From Octopus sinensis (lineage: Eukaryota): 21,176 nt of DNA. Under the pieces are notes generated by a model. That model was not told the DNA's origin, did not search any database, and worked only from the letters and a program-made list of their open reading frames with translations. Positions 2,245 through 20,431 of the stretch are shown here, in pieces; position 1 is the first letter of the stretch, and each line of letters begins with the position of its first letter. The position numbers were made by a program, and so were the translations under genes. The stretch covers positions 1 to 21,176 of the forward strand of contig NW_021823800.1 of the NCBI RefSeq assembly GCF_006345805.1, written 5' to 3'.

Positions 2245-3212
2245 TCATCAGACCATTTCCTCCACTCTGTCCACCTTACATGACCCAGCGCGAGCAGTTA
2301 TCTATCTTGTACACCACATCCGAGTCTCCATTTTTCTCAGCACATTTCTTTGTCCTAAAAGCACCCTGGTATTGCACATCCAGTGGAGCATGCTAGTTTC
2401 TTCTCTTTCTATATCTTCTGCATTCAACGCCTAACTTTCACAACTGTGTAGCTTTGCTGTTTGTATATAGGCATCGTACAACCTACCTTTCACTCTGAGA
2501 GAAAAGTCTTTCATTACCAACTTACATAAAAGTTCTCTAAGCTTTCTCCACTCACATCTTATTCCAGTAACTATCCTTTCAGTCTATCCTCCTCCACTGT
2601 TAATTAGCTCACCTAGATAACAGAATCTGCCTACTATTTCTAGGGAGCCTCCTAGGTATTCCACAACATCTATTTCCCATGTTCTCTTATTACATATTGC
2701 TCCTGCACATCTGCCACAAACAACTTCTGTTCTCTCTCTTTACATTCCTCTCATACCACTATACCTCTTATGCGTCCATGGTTTGCACTGAGGACATTGT
2801 AAGCAATTTCTGCCTACACCTTGTCTATACATGGAACAGGGTCATTTATCCAAACGGATTACTGCCCTATTTTTCTGCTAACTTGAACTTGGGTCTTTGC
2901 CAACTTAACTTTAAGACCCTTTCATTCCTGGTTTTGTTTTCACATTTGGAATTCTCAAATTAATTCTCCTAAGTTTCAGCTGTAAGAACAAGATCTTCAT
3001 CATAGAGGAGTTCCCATGGGTAACCAGTCTTAAATTCCTCCGTTATGGCCTTGACGACTATGTAAAATAAGAGAGGTCTCATGACTGACCCATGATTGAA
3101 CTCCCACTCGCACACTAAATTCATCTCGCTGGACTCATTGTTAACTGTCTTCTTCATTAACTGGGCTACGGCTCTTGCAGGGACATTTATAACCTGGTCC
3201 AGTAATCTAATA
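2245..3212 (-). mobile_element. RTE-clade LINE fragment (RT core to C-terminus), internally deleted and degenerate
   Basis: The minus strand gives LLDQVINVPARAVAQL...HGSVMRPLLFYIVVKAITEEFKTGYPWELLYDEDLVLTAE (RT motifs QGSVLSPLLF and YADD). A Cys-rich segment and an 'MLHWMCN...CGVQ' segment follow, with many stops. Confidence 0.85.
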
Positions 3213-3311
3213 CACACAAGTAGACACATACATACGTATATTTGTACATATGCCTATACATACATACATGCATACATAGATACATATATACATATATATA
3301 TGTTTACATAT

Positions 3312-3615
3312 CACGTGATCACGTGACCAACCAGACCATCAGATGTTGTTACACATCGCTGGTCACAATGCGTTTGCATTGTTTTAGCCTTCGAATGATG
3401 CCACCCCGCTGGCTAAGCGAGCAGGCCAACAGAAGAAAGAGTGGGAGAAAGAGTGGTGAAAGAGTACAGCAGGGATCACCACCCCCTGCTGGAGCCTCGG
3501 GGAGCTTTTAGGTGTTTTCGCTCGATAAACACACATAACGCCCGGTCTGGGAATCGAAACCGCGATCCTGCGACCGCGAGTCCGCTGCCCTAACCACTGG
3601 GCCATTGCGCCTCCA
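3312..3615 (-). mobile_element. tRNA-derived SINE (family C), well preserved
   Basis: The reverse complement starts ggcgcaatggcccagtggttagggcagcggactcgc...ggtttcgattcccagaccgggcg (A and B boxes) and ends in a tcacgtga tandem tail. It is CpG-rich relative to its flanks. Confidence 0.85.
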
Positions 3616-3639
3616 CATGTTTACATATATACGTGCCAA

Positions 3640-5005
3640 ATCTGCAGCTGGTGCAAAGTCCCATCCAGACCTAGGGTTACATGGCAGAGGAACAATGCTG
3701 TTGACAAGGCCATTAGAGCAAAGAAGATTGGGGGTAGGAGGATACTGTATCAGATAACCAGAAGGAAAGCTAGGGGACAGGTCTATCTAGCCAAGAGAGA
3801 AGCAGAAAAGAAGTTTGCCTATGTTTAGCGACATGAGAACCAGAGTCTTGAAGTGTTTTGGAATGCAAGACAGTGTATGAGAGAGATTTGTGATGTCATA
3901 GGAGAGAAATGTGTCCACATGGATGATGGTTCACTAGCATTTAATGATTTGGCAAGGAAAGAGGCTTAGAAATTCCATTATGAAAGACTGCTGGACGTAG
4001 AGAATGAATGGGAGGAGAGTCTGCCAAATGTTGACCCAAGTGAGGGACCAGCTATCAAAAGTGACAGTATCTTGATAGATAAAGCAATTAAGAATATGTA
4101 AACAGGGAAAGGCCCCAGCCCATCAGGAATCACTGCTGAGATCCTTAAAATATCTTGGCGTGTGTGGGTAATGGTCTACTCACTCATATCAAGTTGTTCA
4201 CGAAGGAGTCATACCCAATGACTGGTGTAGCAGCACCATAGTGAACTGCTACAAATGGGAGGTGATGCTTTAGATAGGAATAATTGCAGAGGTATCAAAT
4301 GTTGAATCAAATGATGAAAGTTGCAGAGAGGGTCCTAACCAAACTAATTAGGGAGAGAGTTAGTCTAGAAGAGATGCACTTTGGTTTTGTGGTGCCAGGG
4401 AGAAGCACCACTGATGCTATATTTCTGGAAGGGCAGCTTCAGGAGTGTTAGCATCTAAATCTGTCCAATAGAATATTCTAGAGAGTTCTACAACTATTCA
4501 TTCGATTCTATTGGACAGATTTAGATGCTAGTGATCTCCACAACAAAGAGAAATATGTAAACAAAAATAAACCTCTGTACTTGGCTTTTGTTGACTTGGA
4601 GAAAGCATTTGACAGGGGCCCCCGATCCCTTATCTGGTCGTCAATGCTGAAACTAGGGTTAGAAGAGTTGTTGGTGGGCCGTTCAAGCAGTGTACAGGGA
4701 CGCAATCAGCAAGGTGATCGTTGGCAAGGAGTACAGTGAAGAATTCAGGGTATAAGTAGGTATTCACCAAGGATCGGTTCCCAGCACCCTCTTGTTCATC
4801 ATAGTTCTCCAGGCAATAACAGAGGAATGTATGACAGACTGCGCCTGGGAGCTCCTCTAAGCTGATGTCTTTGCTATAATAGATGAATCACTTCCAGAAC
4901 TAGAGAAAAAGTTTCAGGTATGGAAGCAAGGTCTAGAATAGAAGGGCCTTAGAGTTAACCTACCAAAATCTTAGTAAATAGAAGTCAGACAAATCACGAA
5001 TCCTT
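3640..5005 (+). mobile_element. RTE-clade LINE ORF2 fragment (pre-RT region and RT domain), degenerate
   Basis: Frame-hopping translation gives GPSPSGITAEILK, EMHFGFVVPGRSTTDAIFL, KPLYLAFVDLEKAFDR and HQGSVPSTLLFIIVLQAITEE...WELL*ADV, with multiple stops and frameshifts. Confidence 0.9.
4449..4530. mobile_element. Small MITE-like hairpin inserted in the RTE fragment
   Basis: Perfect 26-bp inverted repeat (4449-4474 / 4505-4530), equivalent to 24-bp TIRs flanked by TA, with a 30-nt spacer. It interrupts the RT between 'QLQE' and 'EKY...KPLYLAF'. Confidence 0.75.
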
Positions 5006-5029
5006 CACGTACATGCATATATATATCTG

Positions 5030-5368
5030 AGAGACCCCTTCAGTCCACGACACTGACCATGGGATTGCACCTAGAAAGCTACCCTCCCAGGCACAAGTCC
5101 GGCAAGGTTGTTTATGGAAGACCAGCAGTCGCCCATGCATACCAGCCTCCCCACTCTACACCACCAGTGTTATCCAAGGGAAAGGCAAAGGGGCCGATAC
5201 AGCTTGCCACCTGTGACACTGCAACTCATTTCTAAGGCTGAGTGAACTGGAGCAACGTGAAATAAAGTGTCTTGCTCAAGAACACAACATGAAGCCCAGT
5301 CCGGGATTCGAGCTCACAACCTCACGATTGTAAGCTGAACACTCTAATCACTGAGCTATGCACCTTCA
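5030..5368 (-). mobile_element. tRNA-derived SINE (family D)
   Basis: The reverse complement starts gaaggtgcatagctcagtgattagagtg...gagctcgaatcccgg (A/B boxes), followed by CORE-like gtgttcttgagcaagacacttt. Its 3' part recurs at 6193-6335. Confidence 0.8.
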
Positions 5369-5401
5369 CATATATACACACATACATCTATCTATATATG
5401 A

Positions 5402-5447
<46 letters not shown>

Positions 5448-5580
5448 TGTGTTGTGTGTGGGTGTGTGTGTGTGTGTGTATATACCCACACACATGCACA
5501 TATATATCTATCTATAAATACACATATATATACCCACATATATGCATTCACATGTACACACACGTACATACACATACAGT
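5369..5580. repeat. Compound (TA)n, (TG)n, (CA)n microsatellite
   Basis: Direct reading; about 20 perfect TA units at 5405-5443. Confidence 0.9.
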
Positions 5581-6056
5581 TTTCTTGCACGTGTTTATCA
5601 GTCACCTCTCCACGTGACACACACCACTTTAAATACCACTTCAGATATTGAAGTATATTCTTTGGAATGACTTTGTTCCCATTATGTCCTGTGTTAAGCA
5701 GTGACAATGGGGCCATCCATGCCCACCCTCGCCAACTCACTCTCTAAGCAACCTTACAACACACGAGGAATGTTACCAACACATGACATAATCTCCAGAT
5801 AAACTGCTCTTCTCTCTTTGTTGTTTTTAGCAGATTAGATTAACAATGTTGACCAAAGTCTTCTCTTATCAGCAAAACAGAACATACACTCTCAGCTAAT
5901 GTACGTGGTAAATCAACAGACAAGAAATAGCAGCCAATTTTGCTGTTAATCACACCCTTGTCTTATATCATAAGACCCCTTAGATAGTGCAGTTGAAAAT
6001 AGATGTAAAATTTTGGGATGGTCATGGATGGAATGCTTTTGATCATGAATCCTAAT

Positions 6057-6180
6057 CAGAGAGAGAAAGAACGAGAGAGAAAGAGAGAGAGAGTGAGTGA
6101 GTGAGGGAGGGAGAGAAAGAGAGAGAGAAAGAGGGAGAGAGTGAGAGAGAGAGAGAGAAAGGGGGGAGAGAAAGAGGGTA
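6057..6180. repeat. (GA)n-rich microsatellite
   Basis: Direct reading. Confidence 0.9.
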
Positions 6181-6192
6181 AAAGTATAAAGG

Positions 6193-6332
6193 CTCCCTTC
6201 GGTCATGAATGACCATGGGATTGCACTTAGAAAGTTCCCTTCTGAGGTACAAGTCCAGCAGTTGCCCATGCATTCCAGCCTCTGCTCTCCATGTCACCAA
6301 TGTTGTCCATGGGAAAGGCAAAGGACGATACA

Positions 6333-6335
<3 letters not shown>
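6193..6335 (-). mobile_element. 5'-truncated copy of SINE family D
   Basis: gaccatgggattgcac.tagaaag..ccc and gggaaaggcaaagg.cgatacagc match 5030-5200. Confidence 0.75.
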
Positions 6336-6371
<36 letters not shown>

Positions 6372-6414
6372 ATATATATATACATATAGATATGTGTGTG
6401 TGAGAGAGTACTTA

Positions 6415-6680
6415 GGTGCAGACGTGGGTTGGTGGTAAGAAGTCTGCTTCCCAGCCACATGGTTCTGGTTTCAGTCCCACAGTGTGCCACCATGGGCAAG
6501 TGTCTTCTACTACAGTCTCACGCCCACCAAAGTTTTGTGAGAGGATTTTGTAGATGGAAACTGAAAGAAGCCCATCATATGTAAACATACATCTAAATGC
6601 ATAGATCTTTGTGGGTATTTCTTCCCCACAATCGCTTGACAACTGGTGTGTGTTTACATTCCTGTAACCCAGTGGTTCAT
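6415..6680 (+). mobile_element. SINE family B copy
   Basis: ggtgcagacgtgggttggtggtaagaag...ccacatggttctggtttcagtccc...gatggaaactgaaagaagccc...cgcttgacaactggtgtg. Confidence 0.8.
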
Positions 6681-7709
6681 CAAAAAAAATCAATAAAATA
6701 AATATCAAGATTTTTTTTTTAAATGAGGTCAATTCATGTGTTTAAAACGTTTCAAGGCAGTGCCCCAGCATGGGCACAATATAGATAGATACATACATAT
6801 AAATATAAATCAGAAATGGAAAAACAAAACAATAAATTGAACAATGTATGCATGTATATGTAATTTATACACATATATAGATACCCCCACCCACCCCATC
6901 AGTGGTCTACTACCCCTTCTACCACTCCCCTCTCCAATCACATACCCCTATTCATCTCCATTTCTGCCCCTCTCCTCTTCTCTCATATTGATGTGACTAA
7001 CGATAGCACTGGATCTTTCCGATGGCTCCCTACATCAATTCCATTGTAACAAGAGAGCCAAGAGACAATATCACCCCCACCCAACACCCCTCTCATGCAC
7101 ATAACTCTTCTGCTATTGTTTGGGGTCCACATATAAGGGAGCTCATCAGATGTACATGTACCCCATACACTCGCTCCCACCAATGTCATTTGATATTGAC
7201 ATCAACATTCACTCTCATCATTTATTGAGATGCCTATATCTCGCTCTTTCTCACTTCTAATCCCCTCCTGCTGGATCCAGAACAAGAAGGCACCAAGGAC
7301 ACTGTAAGACAGTTGATGTTAGGAAGGACAACATACCATAGAAACGAAACCCAAAATAAATATTAAAGGCTAAATGACATCCTGAGACCCATCTGGGAGA
7401 GAACCGCTGACCCTCCAATCCATAAAATGGACACACGCACACATATGAACTAATAAAATGATGAAGATGGAGAGCCCCTTCCAATGTGGAAAGGGTCAGT
7501 TAAGTAATTTACATATTTCCGAAATATAAAAAGATGACTTTTGCCTTTCTACATTGTAAGAAGCTGTCAGTCTCCAATGACAAGGCTTCTAGCAAACCAC
7601 AAGGCTCTTCAGTACAGTGTGTGGTGTGGTGTGTGTGTGTGACTATCTATGTATATGTAAGTGTGCACACACACACACACACGTCTGCATATATAGTTTT
7701 TGTATTATG

Positions 7710-7756
<47 letters not shown>

Positions 7757-7757
<1 letters not shown>

Positions 7758-7912
7758 CAGGGGTGCCTTTGTAGTAGAAGCTTGCTTCCCAACCACACGG
7801 TTGTGGGTTCAGTCCCATTGCATGGCACCTTGGGCAAGTGTCTTTGGGCCGAGCAAAGACTTGTGAGTGGATTTAGTAGATGGAAACTGAAAGAAGCCCA
7901 TCGTATATGTAT
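7757..7912 (+). mobile_element. SINE family B, 5' half
   Basis: ccacacggttgtgggttcagtccc...caccttgggcaagtgtctt...gatggaaactgaaagaagccc. Confidence 0.8.
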
Positions 7913-8399
7913 ACATATATATAAATAGTTTCTCAGTGTATTTGCTTTGTATGTTGTAATTAGTAATACTGTTAATTATAGCAGTTGCTTAATCACTAGA
8001 CTGGAGGCAGATACTATACACACACACACACATACTAAATATATTATATATATATGTGTATGTATTATATTTATGTATATATGTAAATACGCATCTATCT
8101 ATGCACACAGAAAAATAATTGTATGTACATTTATATGTGTGTGTGTGTGTGTGTGTGTGTTTGCAAGTATTTATCTCTTTTTCCCTGTAGTGGGAACCTA
8201 GCACACACACACATCCATATATACGAGTAATATTATATATATATATATAGACATAATATAGAGACACACATGTAGGACATGTCTAGGCTTATCATTTGTC
8301 TACGTGATCAAATACATAACAGCTTGTGTGCAAATTTCACACTACACACCCACACACACGAGGCGTTAACGCCCACTTCCTTCCTGCTATTTATAAATA

Positions 8400-9350
8400 A
8401 GCCTCATCAGTAGGGATTATCACATTTTTGCCCGTTCTTCAACTGAACTCACAGACAGAAAGACTTCAGGCTGAAATTCAAACGCAATTATTGACTCAAG
8501 TAAGTACTTTTATGATAATTATCTTCATTAACAACTTCATTAACACATTTACAGTGTGAAATATTCCTTACAACTATTTCAAACATAATTATGCTGTTAT
8601 GTTGAAATTGTTTTATTTTCAGGCAGTATTTTTCATACTAGAATCTGTTCAAACATTTCACAGAGTTACATATAAGCAAAACATTTCATTTCCGAATATA
8701 ATATAAAGAATAGTTTGGTTATGACAAGGTCAAAACTATTTGATGGAAAATAAGGAAATGGAAATGTTCATCTAAGGATACAGCATTTTAAGTTGTTTCC
8801 AGTAGATTTCTAATTCTCAAGTGAAATTTAAATTTGTAAATCAATTTTATGGATGTTAAATTGTTTTTAGTAAATTTAATGTTTTTCAAAGTTTAGTCAA
8901 GGGAGAAGGGCCTTGCCGATGGCCTTTATATTTCCAGGGTCTTCAAGAGTGGGGAATGGAAGAAAGACATTCTCAAATCAAGAGACCTAATATACATCAG
9001 AGAAATCCTCTTTTAGGGGCATTTTTGGGGGACTTTGTTGTTGGTTTGTAATAGAGTTTATATTAAATGCAGACAATGTGAAATAATTCGCAGAAGCCAT
9101 CCATCTGATAGATAATATTGAAGATGGTGAGAAAACATATTTAATGCATTGCACATTAAAATGTTGATGTAGGATAAAGATGTGCTGAGAGAGAAAATAT
9201 ATGTTGTCACCAAATTGTTTAATATTTAAACAATTCTTCTTGTTTGCTTCAAGATATAAAATAGAAATGAAATCACCAGAACAATTCCATTTATATACAA
9301 AGTTTAATATTAAAATCAAAAAATCAGACTAAATGGTGGTGGTCGTGGTG
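8400..9350 (+). other. Candidate upstream exons (about 8410-8499, 8623-8729, 8897-9350)
   Basis: Strong donor caa|GTAAGT at 8500 and acceptor ttttattttcAG| at 8622 join in phase 0 (...QTERLQAEIQTQLLTQ|AVFFILESVQTFHRVTYKQNISF). A further acceptor gtttAG at 8896 opens SREKGLADGLYISRVFKSGEWKKDILKSRDLIYIREIL. The frames are interrupted and no homology was recognised. Confidence 0.35.
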
Positions 9351-9932
9351 AAGTAAAGATTTCAAGTTATATATGTAATGTGTGGCTGATGTGTTTTACT
9401 CCTTTAGTTATTGAACCACGGCCATGCTGGAGCATTGCCTTTATGTATTTAACTGATCGTATTAGCACCAACATTTCTTTTAAAGTCCGGTAAATATTTT
9501 AACCGAATCTATTTGTGGATCAGCTAAATTAGGAAATGGAGTTGATATTTTAATTAAACAGCAAGTACTAATGATTAAATGATGGAAAGAATATATATAT
9601 ATAAAGTGAGAGAGAGAGAGATACACACTTGTATACATACATATATACACACACTCTTCACGTTTGTGCTAAATTCCTCCAACCATTTTATAAACTAAAA
9701 AATGTGTCCAGGATTTCAAATACTTTACAAGAAGAGAAAGTTTATATTTTTTTGAACAATTTCAAAAATATTTGATGAATTCTAAAGAAAGAAAATGTAA
9801 ATTATATTTAATGACAAAAAGTTTTAGATTTTATTTTCATGGAAAATTCAAAGTTTATAAATCAATTTTACAGCAATATAAGCTAACAAATCAAATAGGT
9901 ACGTAATTGTGTCTTTATTTTTGTCCCACCAA

Positions 9933-10112
9933 CAGTGCTTGACAACCGATGTTGGTGTGTTTACATCCCTGTAACTTAGTTATTCAGCAAAAGACACCAA
10001 TAGAATAAGTACTAGGCTTACAAAGAATAAGTCCTGGGGTCGATTTCCTCGACTAAAGGTGGTGCTCCAGTATGGTCACAGTCAAATGACTGAAACAAGT
10101 ATAAGAATAAAA
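9933..10112 (+). mobile_element. SINE family B, 3' half
   Basis: Nearly collinear with 10355-10520 (gcttgacaaccgatg...agaataagtact.ggctta...gactaaagg.ggtgctccag...gtcaaatgactgaaacaagt). Confidence 0.85.
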
Positions 10113-10137
10113 GAATATATATATATATATACATACA

Positions 10138-10520
10138 GGCGCAGGAGTGGCTGTGTGGTAAGTAGCTTGCTAACCAAACCCATGGTTCCGGGTTTAGTCC
10201 CACTGCGTGGCATCTTGGGCAAGTGTCTTCTGCTATAGCCCCGGGCCGACCAATGCCTGTGAGTGGATTGGTAGACGGAAACTGAAAGAGCCTGTCGTAT
10301 ATATGTATATATATATATGTGTGTGTTTGAGTGTCTGTGTTGTCCTCCTAGCATTGCTTGACAACCGATGCTGGTGTGTTTACGTCCCCGTCACTAGTGG
10401 TTCGGCAAAAAGAGACCGATAGAATAAGTACTGGGCTTACAAGAATAAGTCCGGGGTCGATTTGCTCGACTAAAGGCGGTGCTCCAGCATGGCCACAGTC
10501 AAATGACTGAAACAAGTAAA
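10138..10520 (+). mobile_element. SINE family B, full-length, best-preserved copy
   Basis: tRNA-like head ggcgcaggagtggctgtgtggtaag...ggttccgggtttagtccc, CORE-like cttgggcaagtgtctt, internal TA/TG microsatellite and an A-rich tail. Confidence 0.9.
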
Positions 10521-10844
10521 ACAAAAAAAAATAAAAATAAATATGCCATGCCCCTATCACCCCTACCTCTATCTTTCATCTCTCAATCACTCTCTCTTCT
10601 TCTTTTACTCTACTATCTTACTGCTGTGACAAAGATTGGCAGTAAATCTCTTCTCTTCACCATTCTTCCAATGAAACTAGGGATGTACTTGGACCTACCT
10701 GGGTCTCTCCCCAACACTCAGCCACTCCTTTGCATATATTTATTACCCTAGATCTCTCACACATCCCAAGGTATATGTCACACCCAGAGATTGAGGGGAA
10801 CTTTAGTTTTGTCAAGGACATGGCGATTGTCTCTAGTGACGGTG

Positions 10845-10998
10845 CCATAAGATGCACCCAGTGCACATCGTGCAGTGGTGGTGTCAGGAAGAGCATCCAG
10901 CTGTAGAAAGAAAACCAGAAAATGTAACTTCAGGCAAGATATTCTCTGAACCATCCAACCCATTCCAGCATGGAAAGTGGGGGTAAATGATGATCATC
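10845..10998 (+). mobile_element. SINE/RTE-type 3' tail fragment
   Basis: gtcaggaagagcatccagctgtagaaa...ccatccaacccattccagcatggaa...aaatgatgatcatcat, ending in a short (gat/cat) tail. A related remnant lies near 7285-7350. Confidence 0.55.
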
Positions 10999-11166
10999 AT
11001 ACATACATACAGACGTATGGATGTATAAATATACATATGTGCATCCTTGTGTATATATACACATTCATTCTATCATATATACATATATATGTATGTATAT
11101 CCTGAAGAAGGTCTCTTATTTTTCATTCCTCCTGGGGTCAATAGAGTAACAGTCATTATTTCATAG

Positions 11167-12180
11167 ACCAAGGAGGCGGTGGAGAATCATTCTGATGATG
11201 ATGGGTCACCACAATGTCATTAAACACCCCACCAATATTTCCTAATCCACCTCATTAAACCCCCAATACTTTATAATAAACTACACCAAGTTATAACTCC
11301 TCACCTGACACAAAACAAAACACATTTCACCTGCCAAACCCCTTTTTCATACAAACACATCTTTCTCATTGATACCCAAACATTGTCCCTTATATTAAAG
11401 ATAATTAAGATGAACCTACCTTTCATTAATTGGGCTTATTCATTAACCAATCTTTATGATCTCAATCAGCAACAAATAATAACGATCCTCTCAACATGCT
11501 GTCTATCAGTGTGATTATATGAAAGCTCATCTTTGGATAAGCTTTCCGAGTTAATCAATGTTGTGTATGATAATTGTGTGGATTATATTGAAATGTCGAA
11601 AGATTTACAGCATTTGTCAGGTTAAGAACAGTTTCATCTCCAGCTTTATTGGTATCTGTTAATCCAAGTAAATATGATGGAAGCCAAGCCAACCATGACT
11701 GTCACATCATTTCCAGTGCATATAATTATTAATAATACTTATATTCCTGATTTGTAGGGACGTGGTATTTCATTATGCAACCATAAATTCCTGTAAAATA
11801 TATTAAATCGTTTTAGAAGTCAACACCACATTCTACTTTGTTAGCAGTGTTTTTCACATTATTCTTTTGATATTCCATAGAAATTATAGTTGGCTCTGAT
11901 TTTTTGCTAAAACCTTTCCTATCGAGATGTCAGATGTAAACAAACAATGAGATAAACAATGAGAACAAACAACAGATGTTTTTCTCTTTGATCTCATTGT
12001 TTGTTTCCATCTGACATTTCGATATGAAATATTGTAGCAGGAAATCAGTCCTGGCTATAATTTCTACCGATAATATCTGTAGAAATAACCTCAACAAAAT
12101 ATTTATATTCCTTCTTACTAAAAAACTTTTCACCATCACTTATATTCAGTCAATAAAGATAATGGTGTATTTATATCTTC
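11167..12180 (+). other. Candidate degraded coding exon(s) upstream of the propeller exon
   Basis: Acceptor ttattttcatAG| at 11166. One frame has only about 5 stops over ~210 codons despite high AT (e.g. PFSYKHIFLIDTQTLSLILKIIKMNLPFINWAYSLTNLYDLNQQQIITILSTCC.../LYESSSLDKLSELINVVYDNCVDYIEMSKDLQHLS). There is a possible donor cag|GTTAAG at 11621. Confidence 0.35.
11920..12024. repeat. Isolated inverted repeat / hairpin
   Basis: Arms 11920-11953 and 11991-12024 (34 bp, 2 mismatches) with a 37-nt loop. Confidence 0.85.
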
Positions 12181-12340
12181 AAGTTTTATTTCTAATGATT
12201 ATTCCATTGAAAACAGTTTAAATGTTTAACTTCACTGTCAAATAAACAATTTGTTTAATATATTTAATGAAACGTGTGTTTTCCTTGAAATTCTTTGAAT
12301 GAATCAAGTAAATATTATTTTACCAAAAGCTTTTCACAAA

Positions 12341-12367
12341 ACTAATAAAGTTTTCATTTTATTTCAG
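12341..12367 (+). promoter_or_regulatory. 3' splice site with branch point
   Basis: actaat (branch-point consensus) at 12341-12346, then ttttcattttatttcAG ending at 12367, directly before coding-like sequence begins. Confidence 0.65.
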
Positions 12368-15300
12368 CTTTCATGTAAAAATTAGTGAATTTTGAAGAGA
12401 TAAATTGTATTCCAAAGGAAGAAAACAAAATCCACAGAAAAGAATATATTTAACAAAAAGATAATAATTCTATATTCATAAAATGGAGAAGATTAATGAA
12501 GAAAACAAAATGTTGGCTCTCATTCCCACCACAGTCTGTGATACAACAGCAATTTATAAGGAAACTACACCAATTCTTACCCAAATATTACACACACAAA
12601 ACACAAAGAAAACAGAAGAACAGGAAAGAAAAGACACAAAGAAATCTAAAGAACAGGAAAAGTCCATGTTACCAAGTTTTCTTCATATTGTGACATGTTA
12701 CCGAACACTAATCAAAACAGACCACATCAATACGTTTATAGATTATGTAAAGGATAAATGTAATCACATGGACTCTCTGGGTTTAAATGGATCTCGAATC
12801 TTATGTAATATCAAACGTAAAATGCCAAAATTTCTGGAATTGCAGAACAAAATAATGATTTTTTCACCAAAATCTTGATTGGTTTCAACAAAGACTCTTT
12901 GACATTTATGTCACCTGTAACCCATACAACCACAAGACCATAGAACCACCAAAAGTAATCACAAAATTTCGTCCTCTTCGGCCAGTTGTGACCAGAGAAG
13001 TAGAGATTGAGGAATCTGGTGAAGACTAACAACCCAATATCCAATATTGTCGTCATACAAGGGGGTATTGTAACATATTCCGCGCCATTATATGTCAATA
13101 TGTTGTATAACAAGAGACGGCAACAGAAATGAAGTTCATTGCTCATCTTCCGTCACTGATTTTACCAGAATCAGTGAAGACACAGTCCTCGCCACCATCC
13201 CATTTCGAAAGATGATTCTTATTATCAACCCTTTAAGTTTGAGAATCAAAAGAATTCAGCTAGGATTAATCTTGGTTTCTTATTTGGAACATTCTACGCT
13301 TATAGGTGTCGAAATGTTTGGCCAGACCATATACGTCATTGACTGGGAAGAGAATAGAATAAAATACGAATTCATAACCAAAGAAACCCCTTCAGATATT
13401 GCTGTAGGAGCACAAAATAAACTCTTAGTATCCTTTTCCAATATTAACAGGGTTACCTGTTACAATGTGGATGGCCAGCAGTTATTTGAGGTGGATACCA
13501 ATTCCCTGGACATTCCAAGCCACATCTCTGTGTACCAAAACCATTTTTATGTCCTTCAGGGACATATTATTTATCGGATATCAGGTACAGGTGCTGTGAC
13601 AACAAGAGAAATTGGCATGAAATGCCGCCAATTTCTGTGGCAAAGAAAACATTTTTGTAACGATTATTTTGATGTCCTTCATATCATTGGAATAAATGAA
13701 GACTTTTGGCCCAGGCAGTCATATAACCCCCAGCTATGGACCCCAACATTGAACAACTATATTGATATTGAGGATTGCTACAACATTACAAATATTCTAC
13801 CTATGTCTACATCTTCTATATTAATAATTTACAAAACAAGAAAGCTAAATTATTCACTGATAACGGGGAAATAATTAACCAAAATAATTCAGTTTTCCTT
13901 GAGCTTCCTTCTTTCTGTTTTAGAATAAACGCAAACAGGTTCCTGGTATTTATGTGAAATGAAAGGGTTTCAGTATATCACCTGTCCTGAACTAAGAAAA
14001 GGCCCTTAATAAAGGTGCAAACTGGTTACATGAAAATATGTCATATTGTATCAAAAAGTGTCTGGCTGTGACCACCACTGAAAACAAAAGCGAGGTCCAT
14101 ATCCTCTTGATCAACGAAGATAAAGTTGACATTGCAGAAAGAATTTCTCTGGGACATCATAATGTCAGCATTGCTGCAACTCCAATTAATTTTGTAGTCG
14201 TAGATGGAAACGAAAATAAAATGGTATTTTATTCCACATGTGGTGAAGAACTTTTTCAAAAATACCTTCCATTCTATGGCTACCCTCATCACATCTACTC
14301 TGATAATGTTTATTTCTATGTCCTCTTCAGGAGACACTCTATTCTCAAATGTGTACGATCTATATGGACAAATGAAATGGCAGTGGGAACTGCCTTTCCT
14401 GTTCACCCTCACATTGCTGTTTTCCAAGGAACTCTTTATGTCCCGGACACTCAACTCAACAGGGTTCTTCTTTACAAGTATCAAGACCGGTCGTCTGCTG
14501 CCTTTTACCCATTAAAAATCCTTATATCAGAAATCTAAATCTACGACTCAAAGAAAAGGAGAATGACAAAAAACTTGTAATTGGCGAAATATGTAATCTG
14601 TCCAATAGACAGTTGGTGGTGTCTGACATCAATCATGATAGCTTGTTGTACATTTCTGAGGAAGGAGACATTGTGTCCAGATTATCTCTGCCGTCTACAG
14701 CCACAGATATATGTCGATGGGATTCTAATCATATAGGGGTCACATTACCCCTACAGAAACAATTAAGGGTCATCGGAAACCTATCAAAGACAGTGAGAAG
14801 TGTAAAATTAAGGCAGCCTTATGTACGGGTGTGTAAGATTGGTGAAGGTGAAATTGTTTGTTATTGTGATAAACCATCACATTTAGACATTTTAGCCATC
14901 AATTATTATAATCAAGTGGAAGTAATTAAGACAATAAATATCCCTGTGTTCGTGAAATCATTATCAATAGACAAGAAAACAGAAAAGATATTAATTGTTA
15001 CTAGGGGAAAAGCGTTTCAGTACAACACTACAATAGGTGGTGGTGGTCATGGCAGTGCACGTCGTCAGAGTGGTGGAGGTGATGGTAGTAGTAATAGTAA
15101 TGATGGTAGTATTAGTAGTAGTGATGGTAGTATTAGTAGTGGTGATGGTAGTATTAGTAGTAGTGATGGTATGGTTTCCAGTGATTCAATGTCCGAAACA
15201 GAAGCTTTCTTCAAGGACATTAGTGGTGGTGGTCATGGCGGTCGTCAGATGGTCCCCAGTGTTTTAATGTCCCAAGTGAAACGTCCCCTCAGTCTCCAAG

Positions 15301-18061
15301 GTGGATCTATTGACCAAAACGTCTGTTTATCTGATAGACAGAAGCCGTATGTTTGCCATAAACGATCAGAATTGTTGTTTGGTTAATGATCTCGTTACTA
15401 ATAATCAACTTAATTATTATATCGACCTGGTGGATGTATTTTCCAGACACATTTCTCTCAGTGAATGTTGTCTTCCACTTTATATCTACAGGACCTGACA
15501 GTTCTGATAAAGCCAGACATATTCCTCTCCCTAACATTTGGGAGACAAAGAACCAGCGAGGATTGATTCTTGGTTCTTACTGAAAATAATCTGATTGCAG
15601 GATGTGACAGGGAGAATGGAAACATTAAGATATTCACATTGGATGGTCAACTATTGGATTCAATCAAAGTGAATGTTTATCATAGTATTAAAATGTGTCG
15701 ATGGCAGGCAAACACACTAGTCATTACGATGAGGGATGATGAAGATGATGATAAACTCCAACTGTTGACATTAAAAGTGGAATTTCCATTCTTGTTGGTA
15801 ATTTACAAAACGAGAAATAATTATGGTTGTGTGGCTTCTTTATCAAATAATCAACTGGTTTTGAGTGAATGGAGAGATGGAAGACATTTGCATTTTGTTG
15901 ATATTGATGAAATACATTCGAGTGTGAAGGAAATAAAAAAAATAGACATACCTGAACCATTAATAGAGAGAAGCAGAAATGGAAATTATTCTGATTACAT
16001 CCTGGATATTAAAGTTACTGATGAAGATGTCATCATTGTCTTCAACAGAAGATTCATCATTTTCTTCAACAGTGGTGGTCAATATTTACATTCAGTCAGA
16101 CACTACATGGATTATTTTAGTCGTGATGACATGATGACAATTGATGACAGTTTTTTGTACATTTATGGTAAATGGGAGAAATATTTTCGTTTATCTGGAT
16201 ATCAAAACATTTTGTGTTTGACCCAGAATGGGGAATACAAGAGAATATTTTTAAATAAAATAATTTATAAAGATGAACTATATTTCTCCAGTATAGACTG
16301 TAAAGGACCAAGGTTTGTTGGAAGCCCCAGGAGGGAAGAAAGGAATGAATTGTATGTTGAAGGGTTGTTTATGGTGAATCGAGACAGCTTCCCGGTTGCT
16401 CGTTTACAACAGACAATGTCCTGTTCAAGTAAAAGATTTTGATGTCTCTGAGGAAGGAAAGACAGTTGTGTGTGAAAAAGCCAATAATGAAAATGTTAAA
16501 ATATTCGATGAAGACGGCCAGTTGCTATGTCACAGAAATGTTGCAAGTTTAGTTGGTGGTGTGTGTTTTACACAAGAATCACACATAATGGCCACGGTTC
16601 CTAAAAGGAAAGAAATATTTCAACTGAATGGAGAAGATTTGCAGACATCTCAAGTTTGGTCGAGTCTCATCCCTTATGGTGTAATATGGAGAAAAGTGGC
16701 GGGTATTTACTGGTGTGTACATAATGAATTGATTGAATGTCATTGCATAAAGATTGATGGGGACCAAGTGAACATTCTGGAATCTGTGTGTCGTTATTAA
16801 ATCTTGATTCTGGTCTTCGTTTCCCTTCCATTACATCTGAAACGAACAAGGAAATATTCAGTAATGAATTAATTAATAAATTGGAATACAGAGGAGGAGT
16901 GGAGAGGAGGAGGAAGAAGAAGAGGTAAATTAGGTGAAATAATTGGTAAAGGTAGATTAAGGTGAGATGTGGTAATTACATAGCGGAGATTAATAATTCA
17001 GGAATTGATGAAATATCAGTGAAGAGACTTCCATATAGGACAGCAATGGTCCCTTTTTCCATTCCTGCATTCGAGGAACCTGTTGATTATGATTGGATAG
17101 ACATTAGGGACCGGAACAGTAAACTAATTAAGTTAGATGAGAATGTGAGTGTGTTGATGTTTCGAGAAAGTGTCACATTAATCAGAACAACAACAACAAC
17201 AAGAGTGGACCTACTTCAACATGAACAACAACAACGACCACCACTGGACATTGTCGGTGGACAGAGGAATGTTTCATTGTCGCCTTTGGGAGAGAAATGA
17301 GGGTCTTCAACAGGGATCTCCGTCGTTTAAAAACCATCAGAACTGAGAAATACTACAACAGGATTTATAAATACAACGACAATCAACTCGTGTGTGGTGG
17401 TCATTATATTAGAGACATAACTCAAGAAGAGAGACACAAGAAATACAAAAGAAGATGGAAGAAGAACAAGGATTACTATTTTTGCATCGACCCCGACATC
17501 TTTGACCCTTATTATGTGGATGTGGTTGATATCAAAGATGGGAAATGTATAGATGAAGTGTGTCGTGGGAAGATGGAGAGATTGGGAAGGTTGGAGGGAG
17601 ATGAAGGGGTGGAAGATGTGGGAGTCACATCTTTTGGTGATGTTGTTGTTGTGAGGAGGGAGAAGATGGAGGAGAAGGTGCTTGGATATTGGAAAGTTTT
17701 TTGTTTTGTGGAATGGTTCAGGGAAAAGTCTTTTGTGAGGAGGATAAGAATAGAAGAAAGAATAATTGTTGGTCTGGGATATTATTATATTGCAAGACCT
17801 CGTCTGACCATAATTGGTGAATGTGTTTATATAACAGATTCAAATAACAATATTTACGAAATACCTCAACATATTGAAGAGGAAACATCTGAAGACGATG
17901 AAATCCTGAGATTAAAAGATAATCCAAAATATTTACTCCTCAGAAATGATGATAATGAAGTCTCTGAAGTTCTTGGTTTGGATGTTTCAGACAATTCTTT
18001 GATGGTTTTTGGAATTATTCCTGGACGTCAATCTTTTGCTTTCTTTTATTTTGACAAATAA
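12368..18061 (+). CDS. Single very large exon encoding a charged helical segment plus about six tandem NHL-like beta-propeller domains; apparently frameshifted (assembly indels or pseudogene)
   Basis: ORFs 12483, 13092, 13775, 14038, 14613, 15301, 15570, 16396, 16962 and 17297 are contiguous and co-oriented, and they join by 1-2 base corrections. Repeated blade motifs: PSDIAVGAQNKLLVSFSNINRVTCYNVDGQ; QLVVSDINHDSLLYISEEGDIV...ATDICRWDSNHIGVTLP; LIAGCDRENGNIKIFTLDGQLL; VKDFDVSEEGKTVVCEKANNENVKIFDEDGQLL; LTIIGECVYITDSNNNIY. Stop TAA at 18059-18061. Confidence 0.75.
15081..15185 (+). repeat. In-frame 21-bp coding minisatellite (DGSISSS)n
   Basis: GATGGT starts at 15081, 15102, 15123, 15144 and 15165. 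Confidence 0.85.
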
Positions 18062-18117
18062 ATATTTCCAGAAATATTAAACTTCAATCTTCGTCTTCTT
18101 ATTGTTGTTGTTGTTTT

Positions 18118-18175
18118 AAATGGCTTCGCCCGGGAATCGAACCTGCATCGCATACATTGCATTCTACACACTAAC
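18118..18175 (-). other. Degenerate tRNA-like fragment (B box / T arm)
   Basis: The reverse complement contains gcaGGTTCGATTCCcgggcgaagcca. No intact cloverleaf is visible. Confidence 0.35.
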
Positions 18176-18427
18176 AAGTATCGTTGTAACATTCCTCAAC
18201 ACTCTCTCTTTGTGTGTGTGTGTATATTTATATACAGTATATGTACATGTGTTTATATATATACACACATATTTAGGAATGTATGTATAGAAATAAGGCT
18301 ATAAGTATGTATGTTTCTGTGTGTGTGTGTATATATATATATAAATATATACGCATGCATGTATGTATAGGAATGTCTGGTCTGAAAGCAGAGACTTTCA
18401 TAATCATTGATTCTCCATTAAAAGGCA

Positions 18428-18545
18428 GACGACCACCGCCGCCGTCTCCGCCACCGCCGTCTCTGCCACCGCCGTCGTCGTCGTCGTCATCATCATCATC
18501 ATAATCATCATCACCATCGTCATCATCATCATCGTCGTCATCAGC
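18428..18545. repeat. Compound trinucleotide repeat (CCG)/(TCG)/(CAT)
   Basis: Direct reading. Confidence 0.9.
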
Positions 18546-18725
18546 GTTGTGTGTGCGTGTGTGCAGTCTGCATCTGACAGTTTTTAAACGTTTAATAAGA
18601 ATAGATTGTTGTTGTGTTGTTGTTGTTGCAGTGACATTCCAACGCACACACGCACACAAACATTGCCTTTCGTCCTCGTAGGGTTGTTGTTGTTGTTGTT
18701 GCTGTTGGGGGTTCATAAAAAAAGA

Positions 18726-19095
18726 GAAGGACACTTAAGAAGCCTTCAGTAAAAGCTTTCCCATAGCTGGTCATTTTTCACGCTAGAAATAGAAACCACT
18801 TTACTTTTCATATAAAATTTGAAGGACACTTTAAGAAGCATTCATAAATAAAATTGACCTGTATATGGTCTCATTTCATGCTAGAAAGAGCCACCTAAAC
18901 CTTCCCATTTTTGTTTCATCACAAATAAAAATCGAAGGACAATTTTCAAAACATCCATGTCAAATATTGTCCTATAGATGGCCTAACATCATGCCTTAAT
19001 AACAGCAAAATACTCTGAAATTTGTATCGTTTTTCATCAAAAAACGTGAAGGACACTTTAAGAAGCAACTCTGAAAATATTGTCCTGCGGCGGTT
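18726..19095. repeat. Diverged tandem repeat of ~95-114 bp units, probably internal to a DNA transposon remnant
   Basis: The anchor gaaggacac(t)ttaagaagc, or a variant, occurs at 18726, 18821, 18934 and 19048. Secondary motifs (ttca.gctagaaa, aaatattgtcct) also recur. Confidence 0.7.
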
Positions 19096-20157
19096 TAAGT
19101 GTAAAACATTATAAAAGTATGCATCTATGAGTTTTATGTGTTTAAAAAACATAGCAAAGACATGAGTGTATATGTAGGTATATACATGTGTATAAGGGTA
19201 TTTTTGTATAAAAATGGGTATTTTTGAATGAAATTTGGTAGAAATAACTTTCAAACGATGCAGATTACGATGAAAAAGAAATTTGTTGGCAAAATGTTTT
19301 GTAAGGGGTCGAGGGAAAAAGTGTGTGATTGAAGGGAGATTTGGCTGTTGTTTCTAGCACACCACCCTCCTTACCTTCTTTTTTTTCCTCATTTTTCCCC
19401 CAGAAAACCATTTCGTTATAAAAAAATAAAAAGAATATTTTTAAAATCTCTGATTATTTTTAGCCCCACTACCCGGCCCCCGATTTTTTTCTTTATATAA
19501 TTGTAAAATAGTGGAGAGCCTGAGAAGATTCTTGCTGGGATTTATCCACAGGGATTTAAATAAGAGCTTTGTAAAAGAGGATTTTCTTTTGAGAGCATCC
19601 TTTTCTGTTAGAAAATGAAAGTGGAAGTTTCATTAAAATATCCATTTTCCTGGAAGTTATGAGGAAACAAAGTCGATGGGGTGTTCATCTGTAATTATGC
19701 CACAGGATGTATAAATATATATATATATATAACTGTAGAAATGTAGGTGTGTATAATATATATTATATGTATGTGTGTTTGTGTATACATTTATTCATGT
19801 ATATGTACAAGTTTAAAAAAGAAATATCAAAAGATGTTGGAATATTTGAGGTATTGGATAATTTCCGACTCTATTGTATAGGATTGCCGATACATTTATA
19901 TAGGGATATAAAATAACATCATACTATACCCACAGGAAAGCAGAATATTATACATACATACATATTCATATATAAACTCAGATATAAACACCTACAGCTA
20001 TTATACATATAATTATACATTATTATACGTAACCTTCTTGCACACACATAAATCCATCTGTGACAACCCATGCTTAAGGGTATCTGGTATCACACAAATC
20101 GCCCAGTCTGGAGTCTCTCTATAACTTCTGCCGCTTCCCGTTCAATTGTTTCTATTT

Positions 20158-20170
20158 GTTGCCTAGCAAC
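20158..20170. promoter_or_regulatory. RFX X-box-like motif
   Basis: GTTGCCTAGCAAC fits the RFX palindromic consensus. An inverted CCAAT (ATTGG) is at 20348-20352. Confidence 0.35.
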
Positions 20171-20431
20171 GCTAATTTCAATGACAAAAAACGTGGGGGA
20201 AAACCGAGTCGAAATTATTTATTTGCAATAAAGGAGACATTGTCAGCATTTTTATGAATTAAATAATGTTGAATGACATAAAATGTGTCACAATTAACTC
20301 ATTAATACGAATTAACAATTTCGACGTGAAAAAGAAAGGAAAACTTGATTGGACGGAACACGAGTGAAGTAAAACAGATGTGTGTATATGTATGTATAAT
20401 GTGTACGTTGGCGGGTAAATGTATGTATAGT

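Follow-up and report, generated by a model that had tools for sequence, protein, structure and literature searches.

A probable single-exon gene for a chain of beta-propellers, from an octopod-restricted family, behind 25 short frame breaks in the Octopus sinensis assembly

The locus and its coding path

The DNA analysed here, called the window, is a stretch of 21,176 nucleotides from Octopus sinensis (assembly GCF_006345805.1, contig NW_021823800.1, positions 1 to 21,176 of the forward strand), and coordinates without a locus name refer to it. Its plus strand carries a coding path that runs colinearly to a TAA stop codon at 18059-18061 and that, taken as a whole, is probably best explained as a gene with a single coding exon at 12483-18061, belonging to an octopod-restricted, segmentally duplicated family whose members are predicted to be chains of beta-propellers. 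No single open reading frame (ORF) spans the interval between 12368 and 18061, which is filled by about ten long open segments distributed over all three plus-strand frames. The longest of them (13074-13871, 14376-15383, 15567-16439, and 17225-18058) have 266, 336, 291, and 278 codons, lengths far above the chance expectation because the DNA has a GC content of only about 36%.

An initial annotation, made from the letters of the window alone, had joined these segments into one reading path from a splice acceptor at 12367 to the TAA at 18061. The course of that path is borne out by an intact homologue of 1,798 amino acids, P0002 from Octopus vulgaris, which matches it from first to last residue: in a tblastn comparison, residues 1-1798 map colinearly to 12483-18058, with frame changes. 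The proposed beginning has to be corrected. Stop codons occur in all three frames between the AG dinucleotide at 12366-12367 and position 12482, so coding cannot start at 12368. The ATG at 12483, on the other hand, aligns with the initial methionine of P0002, whose N-terminus, MEKINEENKMLALIP, is identical to the start in the window. The AG could be at most an acceptor within the 5' untranslated region.

When the frames are followed, the translation of 12483-18061 contains no internal stop codon and is 94% identical to P0002 over its first 855 residues, while the DNA is 95.9% identical to the intact ORF at L001, the O. vulgaris locus that encodes P0002. An AATAAA hexamer overlaps the stop codon at 18057-18062, which may mean nothing; the AT-rich window holds 45 such hexamers against 32 expected, a count that does not amount to an enrichment and is uninformative.

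The coding region and its parts are listed below. Domain borders derive from AlphaFold2 (AF2) models of two homologues, P0048 and P0049, with confidence given as the predicted local distance difference test (pLDDT).

12483..18061, plus strand: coding region from the ATG to the TAA, about 1,865 codons with the frames followed, 25 frame-breaking indels
12483..13042, plus strand: Lys/Glu-rich low-confidence N-terminus and helical block with helices at 12651-12918 (helices 57-146 of P0048, assigned by DSSP on the AF2 model)
13043..13691, plus strand: predicted propeller 1, about 24 strands, 6 blades (AF2, pLDDT about 80; weak NHL matches to Brat and Thin)
13758..14478, plus strand: predicted propeller 2, 24 strands, 6 blades (AF2, pLDDT about 85)
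14574..15414, plus strand: predicted propeller 3, about 20 strands, 5 blades in the model (AF2)
15037..15222, plus strand: Gly/Ser-rich 186-bp in-frame insertion inside propeller 3 (alignment to L001; Tandem Repeats Finder, TRF)
15427..15494, plus strand: short helical linker between propellers 3 and 4 (AF2, helices 223-245 of P0049)
15515..16361, plus strand: predicted propeller 4, 24 strands, 6 blades, hypervariable (AF2, pLDDT 80-88)
16429..16793, plus strand: three very conserved predicted blades, 12 strands (AF2; 99.5% nucleotide identity to L001)
16803..16958, plus strand: Gly/Arg-rich low-confidence linker (AF2, pLDDT below 50, residues 677-730 of P0049)
16959..18055, plus strand: C-terminal part of about 7 predicted blades, 28 strand elements, hypervariable (AF2, pLDDT up to 93)

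Frame breaks in the assembled sequence

In a global DNA alignment (MAFFT) of 12483-18061 to the intact L001 ORF, the two sequences differ by 220 substitutions and 33 indels. The reading frame is kept by eight of the indels (3, 3, 3, 3, 3, 6, 6, and 186 bp) and broken by 25: eighteen deletions of 1 bp and three of 2 bp, three insertions of 1 bp and one of 2 bp. The counts are identical when the locus L003 is taken as reference and nearly identical with L004. The path is thus not one continuous ORF, as it had first been drawn, but shifts frame at 25 places, by 1-2 bp in comparison with three intact paralogues. Relative to the L001 coding sequence, these places are:

1-bp deletions, first half, plus strand: 12838, 12863, 13631, 13638, 13661, 13833, 14006, 14056, 14398
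1-bp deletions, second half, plus strand: 14497, 15464, 15502, 15533, 15565, 16408, 16415, 16959, 17252
2-bp deletions, plus strand: 13028, 13952, 16900
Insertions, plus strand: 1 bp at 13082, 14353, 15316; 2 bp at 16785

The pattern of the differences indicates that most of the breaks are probably technical, that is, consensus errors of 1-2 bp in a gene that is intact in the animal. Among 1,769 comparable codons there is no nonsense substitution, where 5.4 would be expected if half of the differences had arisen neutrally on the lineage of the window and about 5% of random substitutions made a stop (the probability of finding none is 0.004). All frameshifting indels measure 1-2 bp and any indel that reaches 3 bp has a length divisible by three, whereas in non-coding controls from two O. 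vulgaris loci indels of at least 3 bp are as common as those of 1-2 bp and have arbitrary lengths. The codon changes unique to the window lineage number 52, with a ratio of nonsynonymous to synonymous changes like that of the intact lineages. Set against substitutions, frameshifts reach a ratio of about 0.5 in the window copy, compared with about 0.07 for indels of 1-2 bp in control non-coding DNA.

The imbalance also reaches beyond the coding region. Across non-overlapping comparisons the window has 47 single bases missing and 14 extra (binomial p=2.7e-5), and in non-coding DNA alone (3809-20345 compared with L001, L003, and L004) there are 29 one-base deletions and 11 insertions (p=0.006). 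Natural divergence of two paralogues gives symmetric gaps, so a one-sided deficit of this kind is a signature of deletion-biased consensus error, which is typical of under-polished long-read assemblies. It suggests that this error affects the whole window and that other ORFs in the assembly may be falsely broken.

An octopod family of single-exon genes

The stitched translation matches 55 protein clusters, all of them from O. vulgaris, Octopus bimaculoides, and O. sinensis, and the family as a whole comprises about 56 clusters at 90% identity. Typical relatives have 1,600-1,900 amino acids, in support of the length of about 1,800-1,900 residues first proposed, and are labelled hypothetical or uncharacterized; examples are LOC106868082 from O. 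bimaculoides and P0002 from O. vulgaris. Leaving aside obvious fusion models, no Pfam domain is assigned to the relatives in these clusters. A single O. vulgaris chromosome of 29.19 Mb encodes at least 28 of the clusters, and the genes for P0002, P0003, and P0004 lie on the O. vulgaris chromosome OX597841.1 at 9.57, 10.30, and 22.66 Mb. In these three, in P0020 from O. bimaculoides and in P0063 (OX597815.1), the gene span equals three times the protein length plus 3, and each of the five is therefore one uninterrupted coding exon, as the initial annotation had supposed for the window copy.

A filter-free HMMER scan of 1.84 billion representative sequences, with a shallow profile of the C-terminal two thirds of the family, returned 30 proteins only. 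Eight of these were looked up and gave Octopus species plus two proteins from Argonauta hians (1,913 and 1,925 amino acids); P0079 is the sole match of the scan that was not traced to an octopod. A search with a more diverse profile yielded two proteins only and is silent on squids or cuttlefish, and a profile word-index search brought no new relatives. As far as the databases show, the family seems to be restricted to octopods, its absence from squids being unproven with so shallow a profile. The lineage restriction suspected at the outset is supported by the named relatives, all octopod. The expectation that gene predictors would miss the family did not hold, since full-length paralogues are annotated in O. 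bimaculoides, O. sinensis, O. vulgaris, and Argonauta hians: the gene is hidden at this locus only, not as a family.

One member stands apart from the cluster. P0063, encoded by a single ORF at 3001-7989 of the locus L007 on OX597815.1, is about 30% identical to P0002, whereas its orthologues, present in each of the three Octopus species, exceed 90% identity. This protein is probably a conserved, single-copy older paralogue and, evolving slowly where the cluster evolves fast, a probable founder.

Other database entries are composites. P0001, the match with the best score, was considered as the gene model of the window itself and rejected, since it joins two partial tandem copies located elsewhere into one fused model; P0007 and P0012 likewise join family fragments to neighbouring genes. 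C2H2 zinc-finger gene models adjoin family members, and at L003 a gene model with faint C2H2 zinc-finger matches (19390-22767) overlies a second partial family copy. The segment 14275-17427 of the window matches L003 at 20137-22589.

Predicted domain architecture

AF2 was run on family alignments of 32 sequences and gave two half-models, both of homologues. The N-terminal half is represented by P0048 (978 amino acids, 90% identical to P0002 residues 1-968) and the C-terminal half by P0049 (1,051 amino acids, 63% identical to P0002, with which it aligns over residues 709-1798). In the P0048 model (mean pLDDT 64.9), residues 1-79 are disordered, helices extend across 57-146, and three all-beta domains follow at 189-405, 428-669, and 702-909, with pLDDT of 75-89. 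The P0049 model (mean pLDDT 62.3) shows the third domain modelled anew and then short helices at 223-245, a 24-strand domain at 253-529 (pLDDT 80-88), twelve strands at 553-673, a Gly/Arg-rich linker at 677-730 (pLDDT below 50), and about 28 strand elements at 728-1050, where pLDDT rises to 93. The domain cores are all-beta, with a four-strand periodicity and pLDDT of 75-93.

Strand counts by DSSP (24 in propellers 1, 2, and 4, about 20 in propeller 3, and 12+28 in the C-terminal part) correspond to 6, 6, about 5, 6, 3, and about 7 predicted blades, about 33 in total. The models therefore predict four propeller-sized domains followed by ten C-terminal blades; the seven or so blades at 16959-18055, together with the three that precede them, would form one or two propellers, for a chain of five to six. 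A string of about six propellers had been proposed from the letters alone. A helical N-terminal segment followed by such a chain is upheld by the models and the structure searches, with module borders that fall within about 50 bp of those of the AF2 domains, but only four of the propellers are clearly delimited and the grouping of the last ten blades is uncertain.

The N-terminal part (12483-13042) is the least conserved of the family, with a mean majority fraction of 0.55. Propeller 3 holds the most conserved motif, with invariant alignment columns at 715-806, and gives the best match to a B-box/NHL propeller. It also contains the 186-bp insertion, within which TRF finds a minisatellite of 4.4 copies of 21 bp at 15079-15171, encoding DGSISSS repeats, so the coding region is not free of repeats, as had been thought. 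L001 lacks the insertion, and paralogues carry it at different lengths. Between L003 and L001 there is one in-frame block of 219 bp, at an unstated position, and between L003 and the window a difference of 45 bp. The insertion may form a length-variable surface loop.

The maximum Kyte-Doolittle mean over 19 residues is 1.4 and no membrane segment is predicted; the first 30 residues of P0002 show no hydrophobic leader on inspection, made without a signal-peptide predictor. The protein is therefore presumably soluble and cytosolic or nuclear.

Relationship to known propellers

Foldseek searches of the PDB with both half-models return almost exclusively multi-propeller proteins, with E-values of 1e-17 to 1e-21, the top matches being IFT-A subunits, LRP4/LRP2, Utp21, DDB1, and axonemal tandem-WD40 proteins. 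The three propellers of DDB1, the YWTD arrays of LRP4 and LRP2, and the tandem WD40 domains of IFT-A and Utp21 are likewise chains of propellers in one polypeptide. However, global TM-scores are as low as 0.15-0.2, meaning that the domains match and their arrangement differs, and at 7-11% identity there is no detectable sequence relationship to these scaffolds, which use other blade families and numbers. The LRPs are moreover extracellular, with EGF and LDLa spacers, unlike the octopod proteins. Sequence models of WD40 and LDL-receptor class B repeats are not matched above threshold (WD40-type Pfam matches are faint and sub-threshold in 1-4 of 26 members), and the likeness is one of fold only.

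In sequence, the family leans towards NHL propellers. Pfam assigns no domain above threshold to eight open segments of the window or to 26 family members, and in none of the members scanned is there a RING or B-box match, the N-terminal side offering only the unassigned helical block at residues 57-146; transposase, reverse transcriptase, and integrase domains were not found either. The Pfam NHL model (PF01436) gives 18.5 bits in P0063, against a cut-off of 20. At the sequence level, the PDB gives only weak NHL matches to Brat, Thin, and TRIM71 (E-values of 0.03-0.5), whether queried with one segment or the family profile, and propeller 4 shows a classic NHL motif that aligns to TRIM71. TRIM-NHL proteins (Brat, TRIM71/LIN-41, Thin/TRIM32) share with the family the NHL blade signature; their six-bladed propellers and their cytosolic location without signal peptide have predicted or presumed counterparts in the octopod proteins. 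The matches are not significant, though, and the octopod proteins differ in having several propellers per chain and no tripartite motif of RING, B-box, and coiled coil.

A closer relative is P0079, a protein of 441 amino acids that combines two B-boxes with an NHL repeat recognised by Pfam (22.2 bits), of the B-box plus NHL-like type found in molluscs, which is TRIM-like but lacks a RING. It has the propeller motif (...LVVsD..n..l..is..G.iv..l.LP....DIc......igvTLP...ql...) in common with the family, is also encoded by a single exon, and shows profile homology to three modules: with module profiles built from the diverse alignment A5, hhalign aligns its propeller to module 3 with a probability of 93.5% (E-value 2.4e-7), to module 5a with 84%, and to module 4 with 76%. 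P0079 has one propeller behind its B-box zinc fingers, whereas the octopod proteins have five to six without B-box or RING, a different helical N-terminus, and four times the length.

The modules also resemble one another. BLASTP between segments of the window detects marginal similarity only (E-value of about 0.003), so that hhalign on family sub-alignments was needed to reveal the internal repeats, with probabilities of 94% for modules 3 and 6 and for modules 4 and 6, 82% for modules 4 and 5, and 77% for modules 3 and 4; modules 1 and 2 are weaker. Both the strongly diverged internal repeats and the NHL-like character that the initial annotation had described are thereby recovered. The best reading of these sequence comparisons is that the family would derive from a mollusc B-box/NHL-type propeller through several rounds of internal duplication, extensive divergence, and disappearance of the B-boxes.

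No Pfam family and no name for these proteins were found, and a search of the literature gave no description of them. The lineage-specific expansion appears to be undescribed, and the architecture of five to six propellers in a single chain, for which no characterised counterpart was found, appears to be unprecedented for an NHL-like protein.

Selection on the modules

Over the whole gene, the ratio of nonsynonymous to synonymous substitution rates (dN/dS) is 0.56-0.85 between intact pairs and 0.92 between the window and L001. A reading of the latter value as neutral decay was dropped, since intact pairs reach 0.85 and the values per module match those of intact pairs. In the comparison of the window with L001, propellers 1, 2, 3, and 5a have a dN/dS of 0.36 (p=0.0002 against neutrality), and propeller 4 with the last propeller 2.24; between intact copies the corresponding figures are 0.37-0.38 (modules 1, 2, 3, and 5) and 1.9-2.4 (modules 4 and 6). 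The excess of dN in propeller 4 and the last propeller is significant in three pairs, including the window copy (p=0.003-0.008). By part, the ratios are:

Propeller 1: dN/dS 0.17-0.27
Three conserved blades: dN/dS 0.13-0.33 between O. vulgaris paralogues; 0.54 in comparison with O. bimaculoides
Propeller 4: dN/dS 1.5-2.4
Last propeller: dN/dS 2.3-2.9

The identity profile shows the same division, with variable blocks at 15614-16404 and 17200-17995 flanking a block of 99.5% identity at 16405-16802. Within propeller 4, the residues that vary among close paralogues take up 38% of the predicted loop positions and 10% of the strand positions (odds ratio 5.5, p=5e-8). Judged by these substitution counts, propellers 1, 2, and 3 and the three conserved blades are under purifying selection, and a dN/dS of about 2.2 in two propellers suggests a fast-evolving recognition scaffold, the function being inferred from that excess. 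The multivalent recognition scaffold first suggested for this locus gains indirect support in this way.

Flanks and segmental duplication

The similarity to paralogous loci continues on both sides of the coding region, beyond which lie several interspersed repeats:

10543..12482, plus strand: upstream flank common to paralogous loci (blastn, alignments)
18062..20345, plus strand: downstream flank common to paralogous loci (blastn, alignments, TRF)
312-524, 1646-1900, 6181-6704, 7703-7954, and 9907-10544: interspersed repeats, several copies in both orientations, present in all four loci fetched, including that of O. bimaculoides

The window matches L003 over 10543-20345, and 11099-15074 is 96.9% identical to L001. 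The upstream flank is 98.5% identical to L001 over 11099-12482 and 95.6% identical to L003. Since the similarity extends for kilobases past the ORF on both sides, the locus arose by segmental duplication and not by retroposition. Further upstream, 3809-9011 is about 97% identical (in aligned columns) to DNA located 5-10 kb upstream of P0004 (the 22.66 Mb locus, L004), while the 5' half of the gene is closest to the P0002 locus at 9.57 Mb; the duplicated segment is therefore mosaic, a pattern that suggests gene conversion. The coding region is less similar to L001 (95.9%) than the 1.4-kb flank upstream of it (98.5%). A coding region that diverges faster than its promoter-side flank fits diversifying selection, gene-conversion mosaicism, or both.

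Just 3' of the stop codon, microsatellites at 18433-18707 ((TCA)n, (GTT)n, and a 15-bp CCGCCG... repeat) give rise to a spurious minus-strand ORF of 153 codons at 18273-18734, rich in Asp, Gly, Gln, and Thr. ORFs of at least 110 amino acids elsewhere in the window, including those near the interspersed repeats, have no Pfam domain.

Alternative explanations

Several points weigh against the interpretation as an intact gene for a fast-evolving propeller chain. Runs of at least three bases contain ten of the 18 one-base deletions; natural slippage would explain this homopolymer enrichment just as sequencing error would, so that it does not separate error from mutation. Many database entries of the family are fragments, and hence true pseudogenes exist in it. 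The Pfam NHL threshold is reached neither by the window copy nor by P0002. The architecture comes from AF2 models of homologues with mean pLDDT of 62-65, built on a shallow alignment of octopod sequences only, and the excess of dN over dS comes from pairwise counts among paralogues that undergo gene conversion.

The first two of these points could mean that the gene at this locus has genuinely been inactivated, though only very recently, and is now an unprocessed pseudogene that arose by segmental duplication and decays by small deletions. The 25 frameshifts in the sequence as given, the slippage-like context of the deletions, the many gene models of the family that are truncated or fused and share one chromosome, and the overall dN/dS of 0.92 would all agree with this. 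Despite the frameshifts, however, neither neutral dN/dS throughout, nor nonsense codons, nor indels of all lengths are found: no frameshifting indel exceeds 2 bp, unlike in the non-coding controls, and the modules have the dN/dS of intact genes, including 0.36 in the conserved ones, while a whole-gene ratio near 0.9 is also approached between two intact copies. The surplus of frameshifts over unique substitutions and the excess of one-base deletions in the non-coding flanks speak for errors of the sequence, and inactivation of the gene is accordingly regarded as unlikely. It is barely credible that each of the ten open segments is a small gene of its own, or an exon set off by short hidden introns. 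They do lie in different frames and some begin with an ATG, but the switches between them are differences of 1-2 bp in continuous 96% alignments to uninterrupted ORFs of 5.4-5.6 kb, nothing is skipped from one segment to the next, and each would encode an incomplete piece of a propeller.

The copies are intronless, number in the dozens, and lie in surroundings rich in transposable elements, and some gene models (P0012, P0007) include transposase-derived or zinc-finger domains by fusion. This also raises the question of whether a mobile element encodes the family or carries it as cargo, or whether its members are retrocopies. Either is very improbable, as the similarity continues past the ORF on both sides without a poly(A) boundary, the copies are clustered on one chromosome, no transposase, reverse transcriptase, or integrase domain was found, four modules are under purifying selection, and three Octopus species have orthologues of a conserved paralogue that occurs as a single copy. 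Another proposal would accept the gene and give it a constant function, as a structural or RNA-binding scaffold whose high dN/dS reflects relaxed constraint after duplication. TRIM-NHL propellers bind RNA, no sequence matches come nearer than those to Brat and TRIM71, and the whole-gene dN/dS of 0.56-0.85 is below 1. Relaxation alone gives ratios of at most 1, though, whereas dN significantly exceeds dS in two modules and in three independent pairs, and the variability of propeller 4 is concentrated in loops on an otherwise conserved frame. Because dN exceeds dS, a constant scaffold under relaxed constraint fits less well than a recognition repertoire, and is considered improbable.

Possible function and significance

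For the family as a recognition repertoire, a mechanism can be outlined in conditional terms. The conserved propellers would act as a rigid scaffold or bind a constant partner, and the two hypervariable propellers would offer ligand-binding faces specific to each paralogue. The family as a whole might then be a repertoire of cytosolic, multivalent recognition or adaptor proteins engaged in an arms race, of the immune or restriction-factor type. Whether octopods have in this way evolved a new class of cytosolic receptors from a mollusc B-box/NHL protein, each a single chain of five to six NHL-like propellers with positive selection on hypervariable loops in two of them, and amplified to dozens of paralogues as a germline-encoded, clustered repertoire for non-self recognition, is a tentative idea, possible but somewhat unlikely on the sequence evidence considered here.

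For genome annotation, the locus illustrates how a deletion-biased assembly can make an intact gene of 5.6 kb resemble ten ORFs or a pseudogene. A small number of large, lineage-specific expansions is a known feature of cephalopod genomes, and the O. bimaculoides genome paper reportedly describes tandem expansions of protocadherins and C2H2 zinc fingers. These resemble the present family in their lineage-specific amplification in chromosomal clusters, although the protein classes are unrelated, and the propeller family is apparently another such large expansion. The innate immunity of cephalopods is poorly understood. The contrast between the conserved propellers and the two in which dN exceeds dS offers a concrete, testable hypothesis of a recognition repertoire and, if the receptor interpretation is true, the family would be directed against viruses or transposons, or at the sensing of some other non-self, and would use a scaffold that no other animal puts to this purpose.

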